A model generated the notes under the pieces. It ran no database searches, was not told where the DNA came from, and saw only the letters and a list, made by a program, of their open reading frames with translations. Below, one piece after another: positions 1 through 62,083 of a stretch of 64,000 nucleotides of DNA (its first letter is position 1; the number at the start of each line of letters is the position of its first letter). The position numbers were made by a program, and so were the translations under genes. The DNA is from Octopus bimaculoides (taxonomy: Eukaryota), in NCBI RefSeq assembly GCF_001194135.2, contig NC_068988.1, positions 42,301,443-42,365,442 of the forward strand, given 5' to 3'.

Positions 1-789
1 ATATATGCATGTATGTATTTATATGTGTCTGTGTGTGTATCTATCTGTCTAAAGAATCCTTAAAACTCAAGAACTACACAACCAATTTCATTCAAATTTT
101 ACTCATGCCTTACTTAGGGTCCAAATTCTTGTTTAATGCAAGCCCAGACCAATTTCTTATCTTTTACACTATTTCAGTATTATGTGTCAAAAGTGAAACC
201 ATAACATCTCTATTGTAAGGTGAGATACTTTCGATTAATTATTTCACTATTAATAATGAAACTATTAAAGTGAAACTATTATCTCACATTTATACCCCCC
301 CACACACACACACACATACACACATATATATATATAATATAAATTGAACATGGGCGGCTGTTGTATTCTTTCTTGTCTCGAGGTTCACGGCCAAATGACC
401 AGGTGGATTCGCGTGAAAAATGGCACACATGTGCAGATGGGTGCATAGATTGGAACGTGCTTTGTATTTTTTCCTAGACCCCATAGTTACCGAGAAAATC
501 GATTAAAACAACCGGCGTGCGTGTGTGCGTGTATGTGTGTGTCACTGAAGCCATTCATACATACATACATACATAATTACTCTCTCTCTCTCTCTCTCTC
601 TCTCGGTTTTTCTCTGTCAATCACTCACACATTCACTCACTACAAAAATTGAATAGAAAATGTTAGTTATCTCTCTCTCTCTTTCTTTCTTCCTCTCTCT
701 CTCTCATATACACACACACCTTCAGCATTACTCTCTCTGTCTCGCACACCCCATCAAACATACACACACACACACACACAGACATACGC

Positions 790-855
790 ACGAAGAATGG
801 TTAGTGAGAGCTGTGCGAGCCATGTACAGAGACGCTGTCAGTAAGGTGAGAAAAA
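790..855 (+). mobile_element. Short RTE-like RT fragment
   Basis: EEWLVRAVRAMYRDAVSKVR, an RT-domain motif typical of RTE elements, isolated between microsatellites. Confidence 0.55.
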
Positions 856-1319
856 ACAAGTGAGACAGAGTGGGGAAGAGACAGAAGATACTTTTAACTT
901 TTATTATAAGTAAAATGGGATGAAGGCCAGGAGGCCTGTTACTATATTGTATATATTATATATAAGCTAAAAAGTTAATTCTAAAATCTCTCTAAGAAAT
1001 GATCACCTTAGTTGTACTAGCAAACAATGTTCACAACCACTTCAGCATGGCTGTTCTGCTCAAGTAGGAACATCTCTTCTAGCTGGTTAATGATGCACAG
1101 CTGCATCCAATATATATCGAGCAGGGGAACGAACCCCCTACCACTTTGTAGCTATGGGACCAACATACCAGTCTGGTTTCAGGTTATTTCTGACTCTCTT
1201 TAGTATTGGACACCTTGTCGGCTAGAGATGGCAGTAGCTCGCCTCTGCTTGCAATATATATAAATTCAAGTGACACACAGTTGCTGATTTTGCAACAAGC
1301 TAAAAAACTAGTTATAAAA

Positions 1320-1530
1320 TCTCTCCAGCTGGCCATACAACACAATCTGTGTTCTTGTATTTTCAAACATGGGAATCTAGCACCCCTACTCAGCTCAAAA
1401 CAATATATGTGCATTAGGAAATAACCCGGAAATTGCAATACACAGATATTGTTTTGAGCTGAGTGGGGGTGCTAGATTCCCTTGTTCAAAAGTATAAGGA
1501 CACAAATCGTGACGTATAGCCAGCTGGAGA
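1320..1530. repeat. Inverted repeat with ~95-bp arms and a short loop
   Basis: ctccagctggc..gggaatctagcacccctactcagctcaaaacaata versus tattgttttgagctgagtgggggtgctagattccc..gccagctggag. Confidence 0.7.
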
Positions 1531-1559
1531 AGATGTCTCCTGGGCTGAATTACAGCAAC

Positions 1560-2040
1560 ATTCATCCTAGACCAGGACTGCCATGTTATGTTGGCAAACA
1601 ATCTTTACTCCATTTTTAACCTTGTTCCATTCACAAAAATGTTTGGTTCAGAATATGTTTGTCCTGGCACGTTACTTTAGCTTTCCCCAGACTAATTGTG
1701 AGTCTGAAATGTACACATGCAGTGGAAAATCTGTTCATGATATGTTGCACATCCCACTCTAAATGTGCCAACAAATCGGCATCATCAGCATAAAGTAAGT
1801 CTCTAACAAGTGTTTTGAAAGTCTTTGCTTTGCAGTTAAACTAGGTCAAATTAAAAATACAACCAGATGTCCAAAATCTGATTTCAATTCTCCTGTTGCA
1901 ATCCTTGAAAGCATACCAAAGCAATGCAGCAAAATAAATAGAGAAAAGTGTAGAGGCTGGAATATCTCCCTGTTTGACACCGTTGTCCACCGAAAATTCA
2001 TGAGATAGCTCACCATTAAAGACTACTTGAGCTTTCATTT
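1560..2040 (-). mobile_element. RTE-clade LINE reverse transcriptase relic
   Basis: KAQVVFNGELSHEFSVDNGVKQGDIPASTLFSIYF followed by LVRDLLYADDADL (YADD). Confidence 0.85.
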
Positions 2041-2546
2041 ATGTGTGTGTGTCTTTATGTCTGTGTTTGTCCCCACCATTGACAACAGATGTTGGTATGT
2101 TTACATCCTTGTAACTTAGCAATTTGGCGAAAATGACCAATAAAATAAGAACTAGGCTTTCAAAGAATAAGTCCTGGAGTTGATTTCTTTAACTAAAAAA
2201 ACCCTTTAAGGTGGTGCTCCATCATAACCGCAGTTAAATGAGTAAAACAAATGAAAGAATAAAAGAACAGACTATACACACACACACACCATTTTTGCCA
2301 TCTGAGTGGACTGGAGTTATATGAAAGGAAGTGTGTTGCCCAACAACACAACAAATTGCCCAGTCTAAGAATCAATACCATAATCTTACAATCATTAGTG
2401 CAACTCATTAAGCCACGCACCTTCACTATATGAATGTAAGTATGTATATTTATATGTCAGCATATATAGGCATATTGTCATGCACCTGTTGGAGTTTGGT
2501 GTTAAAAACTTAAGGTCTACCAAAAAGAAAAAAATATTTCTCTTAC

Positions 2547-3208
2547 CATTTCAGGGGTTTCCTTAGGGATAAAATCCTGCATTTCATGTTTTATTTCATC
2601 TATAGGTGTCACTTGGAATCTACTCTGCGGTTTTACTATTCAACCTTGAGAATCTGCACCCAGCTGAGGTGGCACCTTACTCAAGTTACCCAATACGGAA
2701 TTTGAGAGAGCCAGTGTTTTATTGTTACCCTGACCTTTAACGTCCGAACCACTGATTTTGATTTGCACGTCAACATCATCCTTTCCTATCGATCCACCGG
2801 ACTCTTGATCCAAAACATTAATACTGTTTGCACCAGACTTACCATTTTTATTACTAATATTACTGCTGTCACTACCAACACTTCTGTAATTAACGTTGTT
2901 GGAAACCGTAGATGTAATAGTGTTGTCATTGCTTGGTTTTGGAGAGACAGCTTCGGATGCTTCACAAACCTTTGTAAAAGAAATATTATCATTAAAGGAA
3001 CAATTGGTGTTTTGGTTATCCCCGAATAATAAATCAGAGTTAGGTGCGGTTTCTAACAGCAGCTCAGAACTTGATGAATTACTCAGTTCAAGTTTTGACA
3101 AACATGATTTTTGCTTCGGCAATTTAATAACGAACAAAGTAGCTGCCATTATGAGAAAATCACAGCTTAAAAAGCTAAAAATCGATCCTTGTTGTTTGTA
3201 AATATATT
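2547..3208 (-). CDS. Putative exon of an unidentified gene with low-complexity N-terminus and RFxV motif (QSRFQV; SLC12/NKCC-, WNK- or TSC22D-like), with one in-frame TGA at 2642-2640
   Basis: 169-codon ORF from ATG 3149; the frame is also open back to an acceptor ttttactttttag at 3209. After the TGA the frame continues for 31 codons (IVKPQSRFQVTPIDEIKHEMQDFIPKETPEM) to a phase-0 GTAAGA donor at 2546. Identity is not established. Confidence 0.6.
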
Positions 3209-3538
3209 CTAAAAAGTAAAAACGATAGACAGGTCAAGTATCATATAATAGTGTTACGAGATATTAGCCTGTGTACAATTCATCTATGAACAAACTAAGG
3301 AGTTACTAACTCGCTGTCACACCTTTCTCCCTCTTTCTCTTTCTTTCATCCATTGTTCTGCCCCACCTCTCTCTCTCTTTCTCTCTCATCCATTCTGTCC
3401 TGCCCACTCTCTCTCACTCTCTTATTCATTCTGTTCCACCTGCTTTCTCTCTTATTTATTTTGTCTCACCCACTCTCTCATTCATTCTATCCCACCCACT
3501 CGCTCATACACTTTATCCCACCTACTTGATCACACACA

Positions 3539-3569
<31 letters not shown>

Positions 3570-4312
3570 ATCTGTTTTACATATAATGAAATCAATGTGT
3601 CCTACCAGTCATGCTCTGAAAGTGAGGCTAAAACAACCAATGGAGTGAGAGTGAGTGATAGTCAGAGGTGTTAAATGCAGGTGAACTGTAACAAGTACTA
3701 AAGCCACCAGTCTTTTAATTTAAATGTAAAATTTTTATCGTAAACTATATCGGCTTCACATACATAGACGCACACAAACACATATAACCTGACATACAAT
3801 AGAATGCATTGCATTTCATGTGGGCCATGCCCATAGAGGGAAAATAAATGACAAAGGTAATGGGAGAGAGTAGGTGCAAGGAGAAGTATAACAAAAAAAT
3901 AGAGTGAATCTGTGAGTGAGTGAGTGAGTGAGTGAGTGAGTGAGCAGCATATCAACAACTGGAGCAGCAGTTATTATGACAACAATAAAACTTTTTGTCA
4001 TTTACAAACAAAATAAAAAAATAAAAAAATGTATATGAATTTGTTTTGCAAGATTCCTGGTGTGGAATTGTGTGTTGAAACAGGCATTGTGAAGATCATT
4101 TTTTTTTTCTTGTCAAATAAGCACATGCAGTATATATTCATTCTTCACTTGTTTATTATTATTGTTCTTATTCTATGTCCATTGTCTGAAATCTTTTGTC
4201 ACACACCTGTGACCTCATCAGCAACTCTCCATTCCACATGTCTCCTCCTGTTCTGTTCAGCTCATTTTGTTTTTCTCTGGTATATATCCTTATCTGCACA
4301 TGCATTTGCTCA

Positions 4313-4354
<42 letters not shown>

Positions 4355-4364
4355 NNNNNNNNNN

Positions 4365-4396
<32 letters not shown>

Positions 4397-4499
4397 CTGT
4401 GTGTGTGTGTGTGTTTGCACGTCTGTGTGTGTGTGTGTGTGTGTGTGCATATGTATGTACATGTTTCTATGTCTTTCGTATGTACTCTCAATATGTGGA

Positions 4500-5330
4500 T
4501 GATATGAACATAGTGGCTAAAGCACTCCCACAAGACAGTGTCTATGAACTATAAGCTAGCACTATGGAGAGCATCCAGCAAATAGCTAACTCCATCCACA
4601 GAGTATTAAGGTAACAGCAGATTACCTTAGCAAGCAAACTAACTATAGGCTACTGATCTTAGACACGAAACACTGGCTGGAAACTAAGAATAATAAGGTC
4701 CAGATGCTTCATTCCCTTTATGCCAAAGCCATGGCCTCTAAATACCTGGTCCACAAGAACACAACTATTGCAGACAATGCCAAGTTCAATATCCTAACAG
4801 CAGACTTGGTAAGAGTGATGAGAAATGTGTCCTGCATATGTAACCCAACAGAATTGGAAAGACACATACAACACTTCAACCACTGCATGCAGTTCTCTGG
4901 CTGCAGCCAAATGGACAACATTAGAGTGGACAAAGGAGCATGGGTTAAGTACAACGTCATTTTAGAGAATGGTGCAAATGGAATCTGTTTGCTATACAGG
5001 ACGAAATCCTCTGGAACAGCATAGAAAGTATCAAACGAAAGATAGGTAAGTCCTGCTCATGGTATGACAACCAAAAATACCAGAGTGTCATGTTCATTGA
5101 TGTTGTCCCTGGTGGCAAACTAGTGTGTCTTTTTAGGAAAGCATTAGATAGAATAAATCTACAGACTAAAGTAGCAGAAAGGTCAGGAACCCCCATAAAA
5201 TCCTTGATCTGTAAAACTTAACCATTCAATAGGTCCCCATGTACAGAGAATAACTGTAGAGTGTGTAAGATGAACCCACAAATTAACTGTAAGATTAGGA
5301 ATGTAATCCATTGCACCATCCTTCTATGTA
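4500..5330 (+). mobile_element. Penelope-like element relic (RT C-terminus to start of GIY-YIG)
   Basis: Frameshifted translation includes YAKAMASKYLVHKN..KFNILTADLVRVMRNVS..HIQHFNHCMQFSG, then WYDNQKYQSVMFIDVVPGGKL..TKVAERSGTPIKSL and a Cys-rich linker (CRVCK..NCKIRNV). These motifs are typical of Penelope RT thumb-linker regions. Confidence 0.75.
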
Positions 5331-5797
5331 GTCATAGAAGGATGGTGCAGAACAAGACGACTTACAATGGGGAGAGGGCATGTAGCATGCAAACAGCAAA
5401 ATATATAAACCTATGCACACACACACACATACTTAAGATGAAATGGGGGAAAAAAGAGAGAGATAAATAAGAAAATAAATAAATGAATAAAAAACATGGA
5501 TACAAACTGTATAGTAAGCAAACCCATATGCACACACACACAAAATACACATACAAAAGACATAGTGATGCATCTGTGCACCTATACATGCACAAACACA
5601 CAGATAAAAACACAAATGCATGCATAGAAAGATAGAATGGATTAACCAGGACAGGAAACACCTGGGATGGAGAGTCACTGAAGAGGTCACAAGTGTGTGA
5701 CGAAAGATTTCAGACAATAGATATAGAATAAGAACAATAATAATAGACAAGTGAAGAATGAATATATTGTGCACACACATCTATGCAGGCACACACA

Positions 5798-5840
<43 letters not shown>

Positions 5841-5979
5841 TCTCACACACACACACACACATACCTACACATACAGACACAACACATTTTACCCTTTAAA
5901 ACATCAAATTTGTTATTCACTGATGCAACTCAACCTACATATTTCTTGGTTAATTCTAGTTCATTTCTCATCATTATCA

Positions 5980-6340
5980 TCATCATCATCGTTTAACGTC
6001 CGCTTTCCATGCTAGCATGGGCTGGACGATTTGACTGAGGACTGGTGAACCAGATGGCTACACCAGGCTCCAGTCTGATTTGGCAGAGTTTCTACAGCTG
6101 GATGCCCTTCCTAACGCCAACCACTCTGAGAGTGTAGTGGGTGCTTTTACGTGCCACTGGCACAAGGGCCAGTCAGGTAGTACTGGCAACGGTCATGCTC
6201 AAATGGTGCTATTTACGTGCCACCGGCATGAAGCCAGGCAGCTGGTGCTCTGGCAACGATCACGCTCGGACAGTGCTCTTAGTGAGTTACTGGTACTGGT
6301 GCCATCATGATTTCGCTTTCGCTTGCCCCAACAGGTCTTT
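5980..6340 (-). mobile_element. Repeat family C (RTE-tail-like SINE or LINE 3' end, (TGA)n tail); other copies ~8665-8850(-), 25215-25656(+), 25835-26230(-), 52110-52290(+)
   Basis: Shared gcatggaaa(a/g)cggacgttaaa(c/t)gatgatgat tail and aggaagggcatccagctgtagaaac core, with internal subrepeats ttttacgtgccac. Confidence 0.8.
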
Positions 6341-7049
6341 GCAAACTGCCATTAATATATATATAACTGGTATCAGTCATTCGACTTTGACTATGCTAGA
6401 GTTTTGTTTTCAACGGTTTCAGACTAAGTTATTTTATTGATCTCTGTTTATTGAAAGACTAAGTTATTACTTTTGGACATAAAGAGGACACAACTTGACA
6501 TAGAAATTTACACTGGTAGACATAATCACAGTGTGCATAAACATATACAACGGACTTCAATACTAATAAAGCATTGATCAATCCAGTGCAGACAGTAGAT
6601 GACACTTGTGCAATGTGCTGCACAGTAGGAGCAAATTCGGCACCAGGTAATTGTAAAGTAAACTTCTTAACCAGACTGCAATGCCTACATATATAATACA
6701 TTTGTAAATCGATTCAACATTGGACTGCTCTGTTGTAATGACTGGTACAAGTTAACATAAATGCCCTGTACCCCATCACCTACTCATATTCATATTCATA
6801 GTTTTCAGTTCATCATAATAAACTAACAACGAAATGCTGATCGTGAATTGCGCTGCTCACATTTGAAGGATGTGGGAAATGCTAATAAAATAATATTAAA
6901 ATGTAAAATGAGTTTGTTTTTATTCCTAAAAACCTGTTATTTCTGTTCTTCACAAAGAAATTCACATCTTATCTTTACTCTTTGTTGTTATTGATATTTA
7001 ATGCCAGGGTCAGCCTTGGTCTACAAGGCCTTCTATGTACATATATATG

Positions 7050-7090
<41 letters not shown>

Positions 7091-7321
7091 NNNNNNNNNN
7101 NNNNNNNNNNNNNNNNNNNNNNNNNNNNNNNNNNNNNNNNNNNNNNNNNNNNNNNNNNNNNNNNNNNNNNNNNNNNNNNNNNNNNNNNNNNNNNNNNNNN
7201 NNNNNNNNNNNNNNNNNNNNNNNNNNNNNNNNNNNNNNNNNNNNNNNNNNNNNNNNNNNNNNNNNNNNNNNNNNNNNNNNNNNNNNNNNNNNNNNNNNNN
7301 NNNNNNNNNNNNNNNNNNNNN

Positions 7322-7373
<52 letters not shown>

Positions 7374-7461
7374 ATACATATATATATGTATGTATGTATG
7401 TATACATATATATATGTATATATACATATATATTTTACAACAAAATTTTATATCTTGGACG

Positions 7462-7524
7462 TAGAGTTACCCAAGGTTTTGCAAGCACAAAGCTAAAACC
7501 TTGTGGACAGCTCGTCAGACTCTA
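7462..7524 (-). ncRNA. Type I hammerhead ribozyme with G12A core mutation, 3' of a Penelope-like relic
   Basis: Minus strand reads TAGAGT-CTGACGA-[GCTGTCCACAA...TTGTGCTTGC]-AAAA-CC-TTG-GG-TA-ACTCTA. Stem I has 6 perfect pairs, stem III is ACC/GGT and the cleavage triplet is GUA; GAAA has decayed to AAAA. Confidence 0.7.
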
Positions 7525-7639
7525 TAAAAGGGCAAAAAATGTTTAATTTCTACATCACAGAAATGAGGAAACACTCAGATGAGAAATACAGCTTAAAAAA
7601 AAACGGTAATGAAGACAGGTTATTTCCCCTGAACCAGAG

Positions 7640-8620
7640 ATAAAAAAACAACTCTTATAGACCCAAGAAGGCCTAACTAGCAAATAGGCAGATCCAATTT
7701 TCTAGTAAGTAGTGGACACATTTAGAAAACACTTCTTTCCGACTATTTAACATGCCAGGTCTTGTATAGTCCTTAAGAATTCAGGATCTCGCTGCGATGC
7801 AGATCTTGCAACAACCATTTCCATTAATATATGGGCCCAGATGATCAATTAATTTTCACATGATGTCACACGGAGTCCCTTGATCTTTGAGATGACACAC
7901 ATGGTGGGCCAGGGACTTAACAATCCATCTTTCTGGGACTTTGAGGGATGACTGGTGGTTAAGAAAACGTCGCTTGAAGGAAGTACTTGCAGATCCAATA
8001 TATTTACAGTCATAGGCTGTGGCCCTAATCGGACCCCTTGGTAACATGGTGTGGGGATGGTCATCTCATCGGTGTCAAAAATAAGTATTTGGTCATCATC
8101 CATGGTGCTGGTGGTGGTACTGGGAACAGCAGATACTTCCTCCATGTTGTTGGTGCTGGATTGGTCATCATTTCTAGGCGTAGCAATTATGCTGGTGGTA
8201 ACATACGTTGCAAGCCTGGTTACTTTATTTGTGTCTATGGAATGTTCATTATCTGTGGTGGTGGTACTGGGCTCATCGGTGACACTCTCTGTGATGCTGG
8301 TCCCAGACTGGTTATTATCTCTGGGTGTGGCAATTGTATTGGTGTGAGGTCTAGTTAATCTGCTGTTGGATGCTACAATACTGTTACTGCTGATAGCAGG
8401 TCTAGGTATCACCCTAGCCTTATAGATTACCCCTTCAATCTTGCATCCGCCTCCTACTGGACAATTATTATATACCCTGAAACAGCAACCTGCCTCTGTT
8501 TCCAAGCAAGGTAATATATCCTCATGGGTAGACATCCTTTCACAGAAGATTGGAAAGAAAGGATACAGCTGTCTGACAGTGACACTTATCTACAACTATT
8601 ACACAATGTCAAAACAAGGG
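7640..8620 (-). mobile_element. Penelope-like element relic, GIY-YIG endonuclease region with a large insertion
   Basis: CCFRVYNNCPVGGGCKIEGVIYKARV ... CKYIGSASTSFKRRFLNHQSSL ... LNSRKEVFSKCVH; resembles Naiad/Neptune-type PLE endonucleases. Confidence 0.8.
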
Positions 8621-9156
8621 GACACCAACTCACACACATACACACAAACATACATATATCATCATTACTGTCATTTAACGTCTGTTTTCATGCTGGCATG
8701 GGTTGGACAGTTTGACAGGAGCTGACCAACCTGGGAGATATCCAGACTCCAATTGTTTGTTTTGGCATAGTTTCTGTGGCTGGATGTTGTTCCTGATGCC
8801 AACCACTTTATTAAGTATGCTTGGTGCTTTTTACCTGCCTCTGGCTCAGGGAATATTTAAACCCGTAAGAAAGCCATTCATTGTGTTTTTATCATGGAGA
8901 AAGCTTCTCACTGTAAACAAATGGTGTAAATACACCAAAATAAGCTTGCAGTGCCACCTACCCAGACTGTTGGATGCAAGCATTTTGGAGTGGTTACCTC
9001 CTCTTCAGTCACAGAAACCAGACAGAATGCACTGTGAACTGATAAGACAGATTGTCTCTCTTATGATATTCTCATCATTGTATGATGACTGTGCTAATAG
9101 TGCTCACCACAAATTACAGAGTGGCAGCACTAAGCAGTGATATGTATAAATACAAG

Positions 9157-9303
9157 GTGTGGTAAGTAGCTTGCTTACCAACCACATGGTCCAGGGTTCA
9201 TTCCCACTGTGTGGCACCTTGGGCAAGTGTCTTCTGCTATAGCCTCGGGCCGAGCAAAGCCTTGTGAGTGGATTTGGTAGACGGAAACTGAAAGAAGCCT
9301 GTC

Positions 9304-9361
<58 letters not shown>

Positions 9362-9577
9362 ATATGTTTGTGTGTCTGTGTTTTCTCCCCCAACATCGCT
9401 TGACATCCGATGATGGTGTGTTTACGTCTCCATAACTTAGCGGTTCGGCAAAAGAGACCAACAGAATAAGTACTAGGCTTCCAAAGAATAAGTCCTGGGG
9501 TCAATTTACTCGACTAAAGGTGGTGCCCCAGCATGGCTGCAGTCAAATGACTGAAACAAGTAAAAGAGTAAAAGAGT
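9157..9577 (+). mobile_element. tRNA-headed SINE family A (head-core-(TA)n-tail); other copies ~2040-2260, 16270-16440(-), 22116-22380, 29095-29500, 33172-33500, 46172-46310, 51468-51610, 51630-51785(-), 61248-61420, 62990-63350(-)
   Basis: Pol III A-box (TGGCTGTGTGG in the best copy at 61263) and B-box (GGTTCAGTCCC); shared core gtggcaccttgggcaagtgtcttct..gtggatttggtagacggaaactgaaagaagcc; shared tail ..ccagcatggctgcagtcaaatgactgaaacaagtaaaagag. Confidence 0.85.
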
Positions 9578-12556
9578 TAAAGAGTATCTATAATACATTG
9601 CTTGCTTGCTTGCAATGTTACACAACCAAACTGGCACATAATGGAAAAAATACTTTGAAAGTAAAGTAAGTGCCCCTGAAATCTGAATACGAACAGAATA
9701 AAACAAGTTTCACATAAATCAGACAAGTAGCTGAAATATTCGGGGTTTTGTGGTATGAATACCCAAAACAGTGCATAACAGGAAAATACTCCAAAAATAA
9801 CTCTGAAAGGGAAGAAACTCTAACCTTTCCATTAGACACATTATGATGGGCAAAATATTTTTTAAGTGAAAATGACTTTAAAAATATGATAAATATTTCG
9901 TAAAAGACAAGTTTGTAACCGCAGTGTGGAAAAGTTTTTTTTTCCAAAGGTTTCTTTCGAGTGCACTCAACATACCTCACCTCCAAAGATTTGGCTGCTA
10001 TTTCTAACACGCCCTGCCACTATGTAACAGCTATTTGTGATAAAGGACCCAAAATACCTCTTACATGGTAGCAGGACGTGCAAGAAATAGCAGTGAAATC
10101 TTCCCTTTACTGGGAAAAGGAGCTGTTTACGCATTATTTTGATGTCACATTCATTGAAAGCGTGCGAAATAACATGGAAAAGAAAAAAAAAACCCACAGA
10201 ACAAAACTCCTTTGCTGGGGAACTCAGACTTCCCCAGTGACCCAACGGGTTGTGGGTAGTCTAGTCTAGTGCATCATGATAGATCGCTGACCACTACATT
10301 TATATCTTTTTTCTCCTTGTTTCTTTCGGTTGAAGAGCATAGCTCGAAACATCATAAACTTTCTCTATTCCCGAGCGTTAAACTAATACATCCATTTGTT
10401 GTTTACACCACCGGTCTTCGTCTGTTGTTTTTTTCATAAATTCTCCCATATATATATATGAGAAAATTGATAGTTTTGTCAACCTCAATATTTGACTGGT
10501 ACTTGATTTATAAACTCCAAAAGAATGAAAGTTGGCTATAGCAGGATTTGAACTGAGGACAAAGAATGGATCTAAGTAATTGCTGTTAGGAGTTGATTGA
10601 ATGTTGCACCAATTCTAAAAATTTGAAATTTTAGCATGAAAAATTATCATCATCATTTTTACATCAACCTTTCCATGCTGACATGGTTCAGACAGAATTC
10701 TGTTAAGATGGATTTTCTTACAGCCTGATGCCTTTCCTGTCACCAATCTTCAACTACTTCCAAGGTAATATTTCCCTGTAATCAGACATGTTTTCACAGA
10801 GGATCTGGAACAAAGGACATCACTTGCATGACAGTGATATTCATTCACAGCAATCATTGGATGTTGAGGCAAAAACAAAGTAACACACACGACTTTGGTC
10901 AACCTGGGGCTGTAATAGAAGATATCTGCACAAGGAGCCATGCAGTGGGATTGAACCAAGAACCATGAGGTTGGGAAGCAAACGTCTTACCACATAGCCA
11001 ATACCTGTGCCTACAAGTGGTTAGAATCAACTCAGAAAGGTAATGGCAAACATTTTTGCCTAACGTTCAACCAATTCAACAATCAGCTCTCCTATCAATA
11101 ATTTTTTAAATAAGCATCTTTTTGCGTGTGGTAAAATTATTTGTATCACGTCATCAAAATGATATCTTGTAAAAAAAAATACCCAAAGGAAAGTAATAGA
11201 AAACAACCATATTTTTCCACAAAAATTCCAAGGCAAAAACATGGTGCTAATCAGAGAATTTACTAGGTTGTATTCATTGACCTGATGGCACAGAGAGAGA
11301 AAAAAAAAACAAACAGCACAAGTCCATAATATTTGTAGAGTGATCAATTTATTGATCCTAGTACTTAAATACCAGGAAAAGACAAAAGACAAAAGAAAGT
11401 CAACTGAGTCAAAATGTTGTATCAAAGAAGGGAGACAACCGAAAGCCATCAAAGACATTTATTTAGTCAAATAGTTTCTGGGTATTTTATTGATCATTTT
11501 TGTATTTTCCCCAATGATGCAAAATAAAAGACAAAGAAAAGGCTTTTTATACAACTGAAACTAAACGTTTATTGAGCCAAAGGAAACAAAAAAAAAAAAA
11601 AAAGCAGTAAAATTTCGAACGAAAAGTAAAGAGAGAGAGAGTATTCATGTAAATGTTTTTGTTTTGACAAAGAATTTTCTCAAACTGCACTCATTAGTAC
11701 CATTCATTGCCAATATTTGGTAGAATTTTAAATAGACAGACTTTCTTAGCAAATGAATGACTAAACAACAATTTTTAAGTGTTCATATTGAAATTAAAAC
11801 CTTCCATCACATTTGGGTCCCAAACAACAGCTACAAAATGAAAAGGAAAATTGTTTTACTAAATACCTCCAAATTCTTCTTATTTTTTTAAAATGTCAGT
11901 GTTTAATTACAAATATGGTCAAAGAGGGTTATTCCATTTACAGAATATTAACAGGCATGTTTAGACAATTCTAACCATATAGTAAATACTTTAACACAGA
12001 CACGCATGTGTATATTTGTATGCATGTGTGTATATATATATATATGTCTGTATGTATGTATACACACACACAAACACAGATCTATAAAACACATGCACTT
12101 TGCATGTGAAGTAGCTCAGTAGAATATCAAGTTCACATTAACAGTGTTAGTAGTAATCTGCAATAAGCACCAAATAGAGATTATGGTCTAATTAAACTGT
12201 ATGACTCTTAAGATATCACCTTACCTCAAGCTATCCTCAAGATTATCAAGCTATCATTAAGATATTAATCTATTTTTAATATATATCAAGCTATCCTCAC
12301 GTTATCAAGTAATTATACTCATCAAAATATCTTACCACCATAGAAACAATATCCAAATGGTGTCAGCTATATCTTATCACCTCATTTACTCAGAATATCA
12401 AATATCAGCAATGAAAGCAATAATATTAATAATCCTTAATAGCAGTACTTGTCTTCTTTATGTTTTAGAGATTTTTCTTTGTTTTGATGTGATAAAGGTT
12501 CATTTTGATAATGTCTTATTTTTGGATTTGTTGTTGTTTTTCAGTTTTTCATTCAC

Positions 12557-23008
<10,452 letters not shown>

Positions 23009-23100
23009 GTTTACTTCTCCTAGCGGTGGTCGTCTCACATCCAATTACTTCCGCTGGCAAGAGGAGATAACCTCGTAGAAAGTCTACGAAAATTGCCAAA
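23009..23100 (-). promoter_or_regulatory. Putative COPS5 core promoter / short 5' UTR
   Basis: Locally CpG-rich segment just upstream of the ATG, with an ETS/GABP-type GCGGAAGT (ACTTCCG at 23047-23053 on +) and a CCAAT box (23041-23045). Confidence 0.55.
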
Positions 23101-26100
23101 TCATGTAATAAGTATTATGTTATTATATTCGTAGTCGCTAAACCTCTTTCTGAAATTACACCTTTCTGTCTTATAAAAATAATCTTTTCTACTTACTATA
23201 AGCACAAGGCCTAAAACTTTGTGGGGAAGATTCTAATCGATTTCATCGACTCCAGTGCTCAACTGGTATTTATTTTATCGAACATTAAAGGATAAGAGAC
23301 CAAAGTCGACTTCGGCCGAATTTGAACTCAGAACGTAAAGACAGACGAAATGCCGCTAAGTATTTTGTCCAACATGCTAACGATTCATCCATCTTACTAT
23401 CTTTATCTTACAAAAATAACACATATTATAATGTTTTTCTAAATATCCCTCCTGAAAACACATGATCATTATTGGAAGAGTTTTCATCATAAATGAAAGA
23501 CACCACTGACTTGGAGCTAAAGCATAACAAAGACGAGGGAGCCAGTATGTCTGAGTGCTTGAAATAGCACTCAAATCGTACCCTACTGTTGTAAGTGGAA
23601 GGACGTGTTTAATATTGTAGTCTTTGACATATCTCTAAGAAGAATGCGTAATCACGGCTGGATTACATTTGATTATAAATCTATTCAATCAGGTCTGACA
23701 ACACTGATTGACAAAATGACAGAAAGTAGATACATTTTGATATCTTGTAATGTATATCAGACATATGGCTACATATTAAGAAGGATGGATAGAGTCAATT
23801 AAGTTAACCCTGTTTTGTGACTGGTACTAATTTTATTGATCCTGGACTGAGTGGTGAATAGTTAATTCGATCTCAGAGGTATTGGAATACAGAAGGTAAA
23901 GGGACGTAACTAAATACATGACATTTTGACAAGCAGATGCGCTGACAAATGCACAGAATATTAAATATATTGAATTTAATAAATGATAATTTCTATTGTA
24001 GGTATAAACCTTTATTTATAGAAATCCTTCTCTACGTTTGTTATTTTATCAGATTTATTTTATTAACTGGATTTACTAATTTTTCATAGATGAGTTCTCT
24101 GCAAGTGGTACCAGCCTAACGTAAAAAAAAAAAACATAGAAAAGGTGATAGTGAACATTAGCGTACCAAATTAATTATAATGTTAAAGGAAAGCAATTTA
24201 ATTATTTTGTTGGCTTGTCCCCTCTTTGATTTTAATACTTTTTCGTAGTTGATCTCTTTACAAGTAGCAGCATTCTAACGTAGGAAGAAAAGAAAAGTAG
24301 CACAAAGGGCGATAGTGAATATTAAGGGTATCAAGTTAATCACCATATTAGAAAGAAACAGCTTGGATGTTTGTGTATATGTTTTGTCATTGGATCCCAG
24401 TCGTCAACCCAGAAATATATGAATCTGTTGTGGGATTAGACGAAAGTAACTGTTTACCCAGAAAATATGTAAGAGGTCAGAAGGCCACTGAGTTTTTGAA
24501 GAAACAGTTTGAAAGGTCTTAATGAACTTGTATATGTTGTTGAAAATGAAGTTCTCATTAATCAATATGCTCTGATTATTGGTGACATTCTTATGGTGAA
24601 ATACAGTTCTTACTACATGCATTTGATCCATTATATTGTGAATCATTAGAATTTTGCTAATCATCATCTACAGACAAACTATTGAGTCCTTTTGATCTCA
24701 TACTGAGAAAAACCTGAAACAAATGAACAGTACATCAGAAGATTATTTGATAAATTACTTGAATGCTAGTACATACTGATATGCAATGACAAATGATAGT
24801 AACTGAACATTCGAAAAACAATTCTTATTGTTAAACATGAACAATGTGTTCATTAACTATTTAGCTATATCATTGATTTGCTTTTGTTCATTAAACATAT
24901 AATTTTAGGATCTTTGTAAAATATACACCTATTTTAATAAACTGATTTCTAATTTGCTTTAAAGTTTGAGAGAAGAAGCGGTTGATTAGTTCTGTATTTG
25001 ATTGGTATTTATTTCATTGACCATAAAAGGAAAAGATGCAAAATTACCTAGGCAGGAATTTAACTCAGAAGGTAAAAAAGATGTAATTATAGCATTCACT
25101 CAATCTCAGATTCAGATAAATTATATTAAATATTGGTTTCAAATTTTAAGAAAAAGACCCAGTAAGCCAAGTGAAATTGTAGCTGTGGCCGATACTAGTG
25201 TCACATAACTGGCCCATTTAAAAGTACCCTTCAATCATCGACCAATATACTGTGCTTGAGAAGACCTGTTCAGTCAAGTGAAATCATTGTCATGGCCAAT
25301 ACCAGTGCCACCTGATTGGCTCCTGTGCCAGTGGCATGTAAAAAGCACTATTTGAGTGTGGTCGATGCCAGTATTGCCTGACTGGCTCACATGCTGGTGG
25401 CAAGTAAAAACCATCATTCAAGCATGGTCAATACCAATGCTTCCTGATTGGCCCCCCATGCCGGTGGCACATAAAAAGCACTCACTACATTCTCTGAGTG
25501 GTTGGCATTAGGAAGGGCATCCAGCTGTAGAAACCTTACCAGAACAAATTGGAGCCTGGTGCAGCCTCCTGGTTTGCCAGTCTTCAGTCAAACTGTCCAG
25601 CCTATGCCAGCATGGAAAACGGATGTTAAATGATGATGATGATGATGATGATGATGCAGCCATAAGGTCTGACAAGACATTGTAAAGCTAAATGCTTTAT
25701 GGACATGAAACCCTGGGTAACCCTATAAACTGGCTATAACTTATCTTTATCTAAATATTCTACTGCTCTATAATTTATAGTGGACTAAATATATATATAT
25801 GTATATATATATCGTCAGCGTATCATATATATCATCATCATCATCATCATTGTTTAACATCCCCTTTCCATGCTAGCATGGGTTGGACGATTTGACTGAG
25901 GACTGGTGAACCAGATGGTTACACCAGGTTCCAATCTGATTTGGCAGAGTTTCTACAGCTGGATGCCCTTCCTAACGCCAACCATTCCGAGAGTGTAGTG
26001 GGTGCTTTTACGTGCCACCAGCACTAAGGCCAGTCAGGCGGTACTGGCAACAGCCACTCTCAAAATGGTGTATTTTACGTGCCACCTGCACAGGAGCCAG

Positions 26101-61420: not shown

Positions 61421-62048
61421 GTGTATATATATATATATATATATATNNNNNNNNNNNNNNNNNNNNNNNNNNNNNNNNNNNNNNNNNNNNNNNNNNNNNN
61501 NNNNNNNNNNNNNNNNNNNNNNNNNNNNNNNNNNNNNNNNNNNNNNNNNNNNNNNNNNNNNNNNNNNNNNNNNNNNNNNNNNNNNNNNNNNNNNNNNNNN
61601 NNNNNNNNNNNNNNNNNNNNNNNNNNNNNNNNNNNNNNNNNNNNNNNNNNNNNNNNNNNNNNNNNNNNNNNNNNNNNNNNNNNNNNNNNNNNNNNNNNNN
61701 NNNNNNNNNNNNNNNNNNNNNNNNNNNNNNNNNNNNNNNNNNNNNNNNNNNNNNNNNNNNNNNNNNNNNNNNNNNNNNNNNNNNNNNNNNNNNNNNNNNN
61801 NNNNNNNNNNNNNNNNNNNNNNNNNNNNNNNNNNNNNNNNNNNNNNNNNNNNNNNNNNNNNNNNNNNNNNNNNNNNNNNNNNNNNNNNNNNNNNNNNNNN
61901 NNNNNNNNNNNNNNNNNNNNNNNNNNNNNNNNNNNNNNNNNNNNNNNNNNNNNNNNNNNNNNNNNNNNNNNNNNNNNNNNNNNNNNNNNNNNNNNNNNNN
62001 NNNNNNNNNNNNNNNNNNNNNNNNNNNNNNNNNNNNNNNNNNNNNNNN

Positions 62049-62083
<35 letters not shown>

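Follow-up and report, generated by a model that had tools for sequence, protein, structure and literature searches.

Coleoid cephalopods recode mRNA extensively by A-to-I editing, and several other described systems are comparable to an in-frame stop codon in an otherwise open cephalopod exon. Selenoproteins, recoded through UGA and a SECIS element, carry a UGA in frame within a coding sequence that has no other interruption; programmed readthrough is a further form of recoding, and UGA is the leakiest stop codon. Stops also arise as CpG nonsense alleles and in the early pseudogenisation of duplicated genes. With regard to short docking motifs, SPAK/OSR1/Fray-type kinases control ion transporters and cell volume, and their clients include WNK1 (SAGRRFIVSPVPE), WNK4 (QLVGRFQVTSSKE) and NKCC1. 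Finally, the DUF389 proteins, also described by the TIGR00341 and TIGR00271 "uncharacterized hydrophobic domain" models, have no solved structure, and our literature search with the locus names and animal DUF389 members found nothing relevant.

We analyzed an exon in a 64,000-nucleotide stretch of DNA (hereafter the window) that bears on all of these systems. Its TGA resembles cephalopod A-to-I recoding in that the host is a coleoid and a single edit would make UGG, and it resembles selenoprotein genes in that the UGA interrupts an otherwise open coding sequence. It shares with CpG nonsense alleles and early pseudogenisation of a duplicate an ancestral CGA, a single C-to-T change and an intact nearby paralogue. 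Behind the stop lies a motif whose RFQV core fits the R-F-x-V/I pattern of those of WNK1, WNK4 and NKCC1; it is conserved in all octopod copies and sits in a segment predicted to be disordered.

Identity and layout of the exon

The exon at 2547-3208 belongs to Octopus bimaculoides LOC106871741, a gene for a multi-pass membrane protein of the DUF389 (PF04087) family, here called paralogue 2. Window positions 1-12587 were 100% identical to chromosome CM046608.1 (GCA_001194135.2), and the first-pass annotation, which assumed a coleoid cephalopod, was correct in this respect. O. sinensis LOC115215006 aligned to exon 1 and its flanks and shares the phase-0 donor, and the diagnostic sites at 2708-2643 were of the paralogue-2 type. 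O. bimaculoides has two DUF389 paralogues, LOC106871741 and LOC106871746, arranged convergently about 16 kb apart; the sister paralogue LOC106871746 is intact, and the protein length of both is roughly 700-750 aa. The features of the exon are as follows.

3209..3230, minus strand: polypyrimidine tract and AG (at 3210-3209), putative acceptor, from sequence
2547..3208, minus strand: first coding exon of LOC106871741 (DUF389 paralogue 2), 5' UTR and CDS, by orthology to O. sinensis LOC115215006 exon 1
3208-3150, minus strand: 5' UTR part of exon 1; in-frame stops in paralogue-1 sequences
3147..3149, minus strand: ATG start codon, with 169 sense codons from ATG to stop
3149-2547, minus strand: CDS part of exon 1, 603 nt, phase 0 at the donor
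2710..3060, minus strand: tract sharing 98-99% identity with the sister paralogue of O. bimaculoides, by alignment
2640..2642, minus strand: in-frame TGA, codon 170, context GGT-TGA-ATA, from sequence
2595..2624, minus strand: SRFQVTPIDE, RFxV-type short linear motif (core RFQV at 2621-2610), from sequence, in a predicted disordered region
2585..2587, minus strand: out-of-frame ATG, start of the RefSeq/UniProt model XP_014773846 / A0A0L8HBI4 (MKCRILSLRKPLKC...)
2580..2582 and 2549-2547, minus strand: in-frame ATGs after the stop, the first being the M of KHEMQ; possible re-initiation sites judged by sequence only
2541..2546, minus strand: GTAAGA splice donor, phase 0, conserved in 4/4 aligned sequences
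1..2546, minus strand: 5' part of intron 1, with a LINE reverse-transcriptase fragment at 1634-2038

This layout agrees with the first-pass annotation, which had described an open frame, GGT-TGA-ATA, a further 31 codons containing RFQV and a GTAAGA donor. The minus-strand frame has no stop between 3209 and 2643 (189 codons), and the 31 in-frame codons that follow the TGA (2639-2547, minus strand) read IVKPQSRFQVTPIDEIKHEMQDFIPKETPEM. In O. sinensis the matching donor is spliced to exon 2 (AG|ATGGTGAAG). The segment 3208-3150 was assigned to the 5' UTR because in-frame stops occur upstream of the ATG in paralogue-1 sequences, that is, in O. bimaculoides paralogue 1 and in Logan contigs of a third octopus (L001 type); none occurs in the O. 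sinensis orthologue. About 90 nt upstream of the putative acceptor at 3209 are conserved across paralogues and species, and one related contig (L005) has GG in place of AG at this site.

The comparison with relatives indicates that the open frame of exon 1 is not a chance occurrence. In O. vulgaris, O. sinensis and Argonauta hians, as well as in the sister paralogue of O. bimaculoides, exon 1 is annotated CDS and is spliced from this phase-0 donor. In the alignment of relatives all exon 1 indels were multiples of 3, whereas flank indels were not. The start MAxxLF...P is conserved throughout the animal DUF389 family, with M1 nearly invariant among 56 animal homologues. The coding status rests on these orthologue annotations, on the indel pattern and on the conserved start, and not on dN/dS: omega was 0.43 in frame versus 0.53-0.58 off frame, which is weak as coding proof.

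The annotated octopus homologues were found by exhaustive HMMER search, a word-indexed search having given one Logan ORF only. Exon 1 alone had no Pfam match. In the O. vulgaris homologue, PF04087 scored 101.5 bits, above its curated cutoff of 23.9, TIGR00341 and TIGR00271 matched the same region, and PF04087 is on record for the LOC106871741 product; in these features the protein is like other DUF389/TIGR00341-TIGR00271 proteins. Animal members differ from them by an added N-terminal domain, weakly PII/ferredoxin-like, by long disordered N- and C-terminal tails and by an RFxV-type tail motif. The NKCC, WNK and TSC22D families named in the first-pass annotation do not include this gene: the exon has no Pfam match, its homologues are DUF389 proteins and the downstream exons encode a DUF389 membrane protein. 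A search of window 1-2546 for an SLC12-like ORF detected none.

The AlphaFold2 (AF2) model of the O. vulgaris homologue has a strand at residues 3-11 (pLDDT of the 1-10 block, 88), and the conserved N-terminus MAATLFVIKLP is predicted to be beta-strand 1 of a cytosolic alpha/beta domain. In the same model pLDDT was below 50 over residues 112-184, except residue 157, and the stop position falls inside this disordered stretch. As modelled, exon 1 encodes an N-terminal beta-strand followed by about 170 fast-evolving, disordered residues that contain RFQV. A fold search of the model gave no match at E<=0.001; Foldseek placed the N-terminal domain near PII/ferredoxin-like folds weakly (E only 0.1-1), and the membrane part had poor FNT/ZnT-like matches. 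The RFQV region may be cytosolic, to judge from the basic residues that precede TM1 and the N-glycosylation/Cys-rich loop ahead of the last TM.

The RefSeq/UniProt protein for LOC106871741 (488 aa) opens with a +1-frame translation of 2587-2547. This protein is an artefact, about 250 N-terminal residues short, caused by the in-frame stop and the adjacent 3.46-kb gap. The part of intron 1 in the window ends at this 3461-N assembly gap just past window position 1, and exons 2-4 of LOC106871741 are missing from the assembly. We rejected gene decay as a reason for their absence, since they fall in the gap and are present in O. sinensis.

Origin of the in-frame TGA

The search for the gene and its orthologous codon, which the first-pass annotation had proposed, identified the DUF389 gene and showed CGA, CAA or a Gly codon in relatives. 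The homologous codon is CGA in O. bimaculoides paralogue 1 and in five Logan contigs (L001-L005) of the third octopus, and CAA (Gln) in the O. sinensis orthologue; the homologous residue is Arg in O. vulgaris and O. sinensis paralogue 1 and Gly in Argonauta. Both TGA and CAA are one CpG transition away from CGA. The stop was absent from every relative compared, and the T at minus-strand 2642 was unique to the window among the compared sequences, being one of 9 window-unique changes in the 603 nt of exon 1. Because CGA, CAA and Gly occupy this codon in relatives, the sequences indicate that the ancestral codon is CGA (Arg) and that TGA is a C-to-T transition at a CpG, equivalent on the plus strand to G-to-A at 2642 (CM046608.1 position 42,304,084). 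The first-pass annotation had ranked such a change highest, and its ranking is supported by the two paralogue-1 sequences, which have CGA, by the O. sinensis orthologue, which has CAA, and by the unique T. Exon 1 evolves nearly neutrally in every lineage (omega 0.43-0.8), with unique changes that are mostly non-synonymous in all four sequences, and CGA is therefore an exposed pre-stop codon here.

We consider it probable, with good confidence, that the TGA is a plain nonsense allele of the sequenced haplotype, produced by CpG C-to-T transition and without regulated recoding. Such an allele might be heterozygous or polymorphic, or recently fixed, and would owe its tolerance to the intact sister paralogue LOC106871746 about 16 kb away. 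With termination at codon 170, beta-strand 1 would be cut off from the remainder of its domain and RFQV would be lost; the allele would be loss-of-function for the full-length protein. As in other CpG nonsense alleles, no second disabling change was seen in the assembled exons; moreover, the O. sinensis orthologue has the complementary-strand transition (CAA). Unlike in typical early pseudogenisation, the one animal sequenced may be heterozygous for the allele, and exons 2-4 fall in a gap of the assembly.

The state of the gene downstream is informative as to the age of the stop. None of the 12 assembled downstream exons is interrupted (488-aa model), omega of the DUF389 region was 0.37 versus O. 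sinensis, and the O. bimaculoides branch had no non-synonymous excess in this region (5 synonymous/5 non-synonymous versus 7/11). With the downstream exons intact, the stop should be young or polymorphic; a base error is less likely. An old, decayed pseudogene was rejected on the same observations, there being one stop only, while exons 2-4 are unassembled. A collection of 15 billion proteins contained no exact match to the 169-aa ORF or to its R, W and Q read-through versions, a result that is uninformative.

A consensus or assembly error, in which the animal would have a sense codon such as CGA and the T would be an artefact of a short-read draft, is a minor alternative with a low probability. 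The intact remainder of the assembled gene would fit an error, and the assembly is of draft quality, with N gaps at window 4355-4364 and 7091-7321 in addition to the 3461-N gap abutting position 1. Furthermore, misplaced reads could be drawn to the tract of about 350 nt with 98-99% identity to the paralogue, 65 nt from the stop; this tract (2710..3060) may reflect gene conversion or, less likely, assembly cross-talk. However, the TGA is outside it, in paralogue-2-specific sequence: within 2705-2643, 60/63 positions match O. sinensis paralogue 2. Reads recruited from the sister paralogue would carry its CGA and thus restore Arg, not yield TGA, and the GCA_001194135.2 record carries the same base as the window. 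Single-base errors are also likely to be much rarer than real lineage-specific substitutions in exon 1, as the 9 in 603 nt far outnumber the expected base errors. For these reasons we infer that the T at 2642 is a true allele.

Possible splicing and recoding at the stop

Splicing that avoids the stop, either from a GTAAGG donor at 2680 or in a transcript skipping the stop-containing part of the exon, was the least probable of the readings. The sequence at 2680-2675 (minus strand) matches the donor consensus well, and O. sinensis shares it. However, the 469 nt from the ATG to 2681 end in phase 1, whereas orthologous exon 2 is in phase 0 and IKKENES, the next exon in the assembly, requires 2 nt of the one before it, so that both junctions would shift the frame. 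In addition, the hexamer is part of the Ser-Lys-Val coding sequence (AGT AAG GTG) of paralogue 2, and all annotated orthologues use the 2546-type donor. The first-pass annotation had listed this donor as a way around the stop, which the frame of both exons argues against.

Editing of UGA to UGG (Trp) would make the genomic stop conditionally removable and yield a full-length protein bearing RFQV. Extensive coleoid recoding and the otherwise undecayed state of LOC106871741 are in its favor, as is the fact that one edit, at minus-strand 2640, would suffice; a lone stop in an undecayed gene is the expected look of editing or readthrough as well as of a nonsense allele. On the other hand, a 5' G is the least favored neighbor of an ADAR target, and G is the base found here. 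The local fold (2700-2547) was no more stable than shuffled sequences (z = 0.22). The longest complementarity to 2560-2720 within window 1-12000 was 11 nt, which is at chance level and provides no dsRNA partner for ADAR. The site differs from known cephalopod recoding in all three features. Relatives have R, Q or G at this residue and never W, and there is thus no history of Trp at this position. Editing, which the first-pass annotation had ranked second as attractive in a cephalopod but weakened by the 5' G, is very unlikely.

Readthrough or selenocysteine insertion, by which some full-length protein would be made, is if anything slightly less probable than editing. UGA is prone to leak, as noted above, and the context UGA-AUAG is one base off UGA-CUAG. 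Against readthrough, the +4 base is A and not C, the fold score given above indicates no stimulatory structure downstream, and the stop is conserved in no relative, which leaves a dedicated signal without evolutionary support; programmed readthrough sites differ in each of these respects. With regard to selenocysteine, no SECIS was present among Rfam matches at E<=1 over the gene and 10 kb downstream (locus sequence 9000-57218), and the miRNA-like Rfam matches obtained were below gathering scores, on simple repeats or foldback elements. Aligned residues were R, Q or G, never Cys or Sec, and the site is in both respects unlike selenoproteins. Neither form of UGA recoding suggested in the first-pass annotation, nor its idea of a regulated switch for kinase docking, gained support, and a plain nonsense allele is still the preferred reading.

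The RFQV motif and the DUF389 family

RFQV, the short motif pointed out in the first-pass annotation, is conserved in octopods, being present in 7/7 full-length homologues. Validated CCT-binding motifs have Gly/Ser at -2, Ser/Thr at +3, and no Pro at +1 or +3 (PMC12413468). The window peptide S-R-F-Q-V-T-P has the R-F-x-V/I core and this flank signature (PMC12413468), whereas position -2 is C or N in other octopod copies. As in WNK1, the octopus motif has Ser at -2, Thr at +3 and Pro at +4. Its carrier, a DUF389 protein, differs from the SPAK/OSR1 clients named above, being neither an SLC12 transporter nor a WNK.

A second motif was observed in the C-terminal tail of the family. An aligned RFxV(T/S)(P/K)V-acidic motif occurred in about 40% of 122 homologues from molluscs, annelids, brachiopods, arthropods and rotifers, and differs little from RFIVSPVPE, the docking peptide of human WNK1. 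Its consensus, RFxV(T/S)(P/K)V.E(E/D), is almost that of the WNK1 peptide. Cephalopod copies of the C-terminal motif have K in place of R, and decapodiform homologues are without any perfect RFxV. The peptides are KPQSRFQVTPIDEIK for the motif, GKEKKFTVTSVPES for the cephalopod tail and, for example, ARFQVTPVPEEQL for the canonical family tail.

These similarities raise the possibility, which we regard as tentative, that RFQV is a genuine docking site for a CCT domain (SPAK/OSR1) or a WNK/NRBP CCT-like domain, that the animal DUF389 family comprises unrecognized WNK-SPAK/OSR1 clients, and that octopods gained a further copy at the N-terminal side. In the O. bimaculoides TGA allele the protein would end just ahead of this copy. 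A further layer, in which the UGA is edited or read through and docking becomes conditional, is much less likely, with only a slight chance of being correct.

The stop itself would be of minor importance, one more CpG nonsense change in a redundant duplicate in a draft assembly, and the context of the motif possibly matters more. A wide and uncharacterized invertebrate family, combining DUF389 with a PII-like domain, has a deeply conserved WNK1-like RFxV tail motif, and docking of SPAK/OSR1/Fray-type kinases may be considered a candidate mode of regulation of the DUF389 family.

Identity and structure of the exon

All features that the first-pass annotation described for this exon were found again when the minus strand was read.

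Features of the exon
3210-3209, minus strand: pyrimidine tract and AG 5' of the exon, a putative acceptor
3209 to 2643, minus strand: open frame, with ATG at 3149-3147 and then 169 sense codons
2642-2640, minus strand: in-frame stop (GGT-TGA-ATA)
31 in-frame codons past the TGA, minus strand: IVKPQSRFQVTPIDEIKHEMQDFIPKETPEM, with RFQV at 2621-2610
2546-2541, minus strand: GTAAGA donor, directly after the 31 codons

A Pfam search with the exon alone gave no match. A word-indexed search detected a single ORF (P0001), carried by five Logan contigs from a third octopus species, and an exhaustive HMMER search with this ORF identified P0002, an Octopus vulgaris protein of 748 aa, together with its O. 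sinensis counterpart LOC115215061. The first ~190 residues of both correspond to this exon and the remainder to a DUF389 (PF04087) membrane domain (101.5 bits against a cutoff of 23.9 for P0002). The gene thus belongs to DUF389 instead of the NKCC, WNK or TSC22D families suggested earlier. Literature searches found no link of animal DUF389 proteins to the WNK-SPAK/OSR1 pathway or any other role. The family has no solved structure. Searching with P0002 gave ~750 homologues and revealed two paralogues in octopuses: paralogue 1 (O. bimaculoides LOC106871746, O. sinensis LOC115215061) and paralogue 2 (LOC106871741 and LOC115215006, respectively). Window positions 1-12587 were 100% identical to the LOC106871741 locus on chromosome CM046608.1 of GCA_001194135.2 (record position = 42,301,442 + window position). 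Because the paralogue-specific segment 2708-2643 (LALSNSVLGNLSKVPPQLGADSQG) matched O. sinensis paralogue 2 (60/63 nt, versus 48/63 for the sister paralogue), we assigned the exon to O. bimaculoides paralogue 2 as its exon 1. This gene and its sister copy in the species converge, their 3' ends lying ~16 kb apart. The upstream neighbour, also on the minus strand, encodes a 362-aa JAB/MPN and CSN5_C protein (COP9 signalosome subunit 5 orthologue), whose final coding piece ends at ~12557-12587.

Comparative sequence evidence indicates that 2547-3208 is a real coding exon. The O. sinensis junction, GAAACG|GTAAGA (phase 0), is spliced to AG|ATGGTGAAG (exon 2, phase 0); the N-terminus MAATLF(V/I)IK(L/I)P is common to Argonauta hians and decapodiform-like transcripts, M1 is nearly invariant among 56 animal homologues, and indels measure 3, 6 or 72 nt within the CDS and are not multiples of three in the flanks. 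Since in-frame stops precede the ATG in paralogue-1 sequences (there are none in the O. sinensis orthologue), 3208-3150 was considered 5' UTR. About 90 nt 5' of the putative acceptor (3210-3300, minus), containing TATTATATGA, are kept in both paralogues and three species, and could serve as a core promoter or else as branch point plus polypyrimidine region; farther upstream, in GA-rich repeats, the alignment holds for orthologues alone. In one Logan contig (L005), GG replaces the AG of the acceptor.

Amino-acid constraint on exon 1 appears weak, with omega of 0.43 against a paralogue-1-type contig (L001), 0.6-0.8 against O. sinensis, and 0.53-0.58 in off-frame controls. This is explained by the AF2 model of the O. 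vulgaris homologue, in which most of the exon product is disordered: residues 3-11 form a confident beta-strand of a small alpha/beta domain (residues 189-253), and residues ~20-184 have pLDDT <50. Both the stop and RFQV are therein predicted to lie inside the disordered insert. The peptide MAATLFIIKLP (in P0002; window 3149-3117, minus) is predicted as beta-strand 1 of a small domain resembling PII/ferredoxin folds. The other parts of this domain are encoded ~170 residues further on (exons 2-4); octopod exon 1 therefore appears to consist of a strand plus a long disordered insert. A Foldseek search with the N-terminal domain gave PII-like similarity that was weak only (E 0.1-1).

Origin of the TGA codon

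The history of the codon was examined using a four-way DNA alignment and the O. sinensis orthologue.

State of the codon in octopods
O. bimaculoides paralogue 2 (window): TGA
O. bimaculoides paralogue 1: CGA
L001-L005, contigs of paralogue-1 type from a third octopus: CGA
O. sinensis orthologue: CAA
Paralogue 1 proteins of O. vulgaris and O. sinensis: Arg
Argonauta hians protein: Gly

As a single transition separates CGA from TGA and, on the other strand of that CpG, from CAA, the ancestral codon was deduced to be CGA. Including T at 2642, nine changes in exon 1 are unique to the window (2 synonymous, 6 non-synonymous and 1 stop), a ratio resembling those of the other three lineages, and a second CpG transition, ACG to ATG at 2548, is among them. 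These observations support the proposal of a nonsense allele or consensus error at a CpG, and we consider it quite probable that the TGA is a mundane CGA-to-TGA nonsense allele in a redundant paralogue. A true allele is favoured over a consensus error: real lineage-specific substitutions in the exon (1.5%) would vastly exceed the expected consensus errors, and an assembly error seems improbable. Misplaced paralogue reads are ruled out as the source because the sister paralogue has CGA; the sequence flanking the TGA is also paralogue-2-specific. Exact look-ups of the 169-aa ORF and its read-through versions in the protein collection gave no match.

Escape from the stop by recoding or splicing has, in total, a similarly small probability. 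Selenocysteine insertion or readthrough at the UGA is very unlikely: the gene and 10 kb downstream contained no match to the SECIS family at E<=1, the segment 2700-2547 showed no stable local structure (z = 0.22), the +4 base is A, and the stop is conserved in no relative. The R/Q/G variability at this codon is the opposite of what is expected of a selenocysteine or dedicated recoding site. A-to-I editing of the UGA, which would remove the stop, is unlikely, given the 5' G neighbour, the absence of a complementary partner >11 nt from window 1-12000 as well as of a stable local fold, and the lack of Trp at this position in any relative. Use of a donor at 2680, upstream of the stop, was rejected: ATG to 2681 spans 469 nt and ends in phase 1, which fits neither exon 2 (phase 0) nor "IKKENES", the next assembled exon. 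As a stop codon, the TGA is ordinary.

State of the gene and consequences of the stop

Each of the 12 downstream exons in the assembly has an open frame, and together they encode a 488-aa RefSeq product. Omega for the DUF389 part was 0.37 against O. sinensis, probably an overestimate due to HSP-edge effects, and unique synonymous/non-synonymous changes numbered 5/5 on the O. bimaculoides branch and 7/11 on the O. sinensis branch. These values gave no sign of long-term decay of LOC106871741, and the stop should therefore be young, polymorphic, artefactual or bypassed.

Exons 2-4, present in O. sinensis (L007, the orthologue record, 21960-23629), are absent from the O. bimaculoides assembly, where they fall in a 3461-N gap adjoining window position 1 (L006, the chromosome record, 12588-16048). 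The database protein XP_014773846 / A0A0L8HBI4 starts at an out-of-frame ATG at 2587 (2585-2587, minus; MKCRILSLRKPLK) and joins the 2546 donor to the "IKKENES" exon, which is the fifth exon and whose acceptor requires 2 nt of the preceding exon. This odd protein results from the TGA and the gap together and is an artefactual gene model; a corrected model and recognition of the artefact are by-products of our analysis. Further N runs at 4355-4364, 7091-7321 and ~61450-62050, flanked by TA, CA and GA microsatellites, are typical short-read scaffold gaps, a sign of draft-level assembly around the finding.

Intron 1 contains part of a LINE-type reverse transcriptase, including a YADD motif (1634-2038, minus; Pfam RVT_1, E = 5.8e-5, under the gathering score), and a near-perfect foldback at 1322-1530 (94-nt arms 1322-1415 and 1437-1530, 85% complementary, 21-nt loop). 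The latter is probably a MITE or foldback element; it matched plant miRNA-precursor models below threshold on both strands (MIR5070, 72 bits). A 228-aa, ATG-initiated, Ser/Thr/Asn-rich ORF at 7849-8535 (minus), ~4.6 kb upstream of the exon, had no Pfam match and may derive from a transposable element.

Termination at codon 170 would yield a 169-aa fragment comprising beta-strand 1 and a disordered tail, and the transcript would be a candidate for NMD. Translation might restart at one of two in-frame AUGs (2582, 2549) or where exon 2 begins, at its first codon, giving a protein without the conserved beta-strand 1 and RFQV. Intact paralogue 1 probably buffers the loss. In mid exon 1, a ~350-nt tract (~3060-2710, minus) is 98-99% identical to paralogue 1 (LOC106871746), likely caused by gene conversion between the duplicates, which could repair or spread such a lesion. 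The sister copy of the tract is inverted and lies ~50-100 kb off. On either side of the tract, orthology to O. sinensis paralogue 2 is clear, and the tract includes a 72-nt segment missing from that gene.

RFQV and a C-terminal family motif

RFQV is found in every octopod copy (both paralogues of three Octopus species, and Argonauta), within otherwise poorly conserved sequence. Decapodiform and non-cephalopod homologues lack it in their N-terminal regions; the rate of RFx[VI] there is low (~4e-4 per residue overall) and does not exceed that of the C-terminal regions. A homologous motif was unexpectedly detected close to the C-terminus of family members. In the last 110 residues, RFx[VI] was present in 49/122 proteins, versus 3.8 +/- 1.9 (maximum 11) in shuffles, and fell into a single block of columns when 56 members were aligned with MAFFT, with the consensus (S/P/G)-R-F-x-V-(T/S)-(P/K)-(V/A)-x-(E/D)-(E/D). 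Spiders, for instance, have ARFQVTPVPEE, oyster RFKVSKVNED and Lingula RFTVTKVEDP; the corresponding cephalopod sequence is KKFTVTSVPES. This motif, which appears unreported, strikingly resembles the peptides by which human WNK1 (SAGRRFIVSPVPE) and WNK4 (QLVGRFQVTSSKE) bind OSR1/SPAK. Validated motifs carry Gly/Ser at -2, Ser/Thr at +3 and no Pro at +1 and +3 (PMC12413468); the family motif agrees with this signature, and the window sequence S-RFQV-T-P-I-D-E (2624-2595, minus) matches it fully. BLASTP also gave a weak pairing between the regions around the N- and C-terminal motifs (IVKPECRFQVTPIDETEPEH vs VVGKEKKFTVTSVPES-PKH, E = 0.57). Caution is warranted, since cephalopod tails have K for R and decapodiforms lack any perfect motif. 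The suggestion that RFQV is a kinase-docking motif thus gained family-level support, with docking itself a candidate function, and we regard it as plausible. These sequence comparisons lead to the testable hypothesis that animal DUF389 proteins may bear a conserved CCT-docking-type motif.
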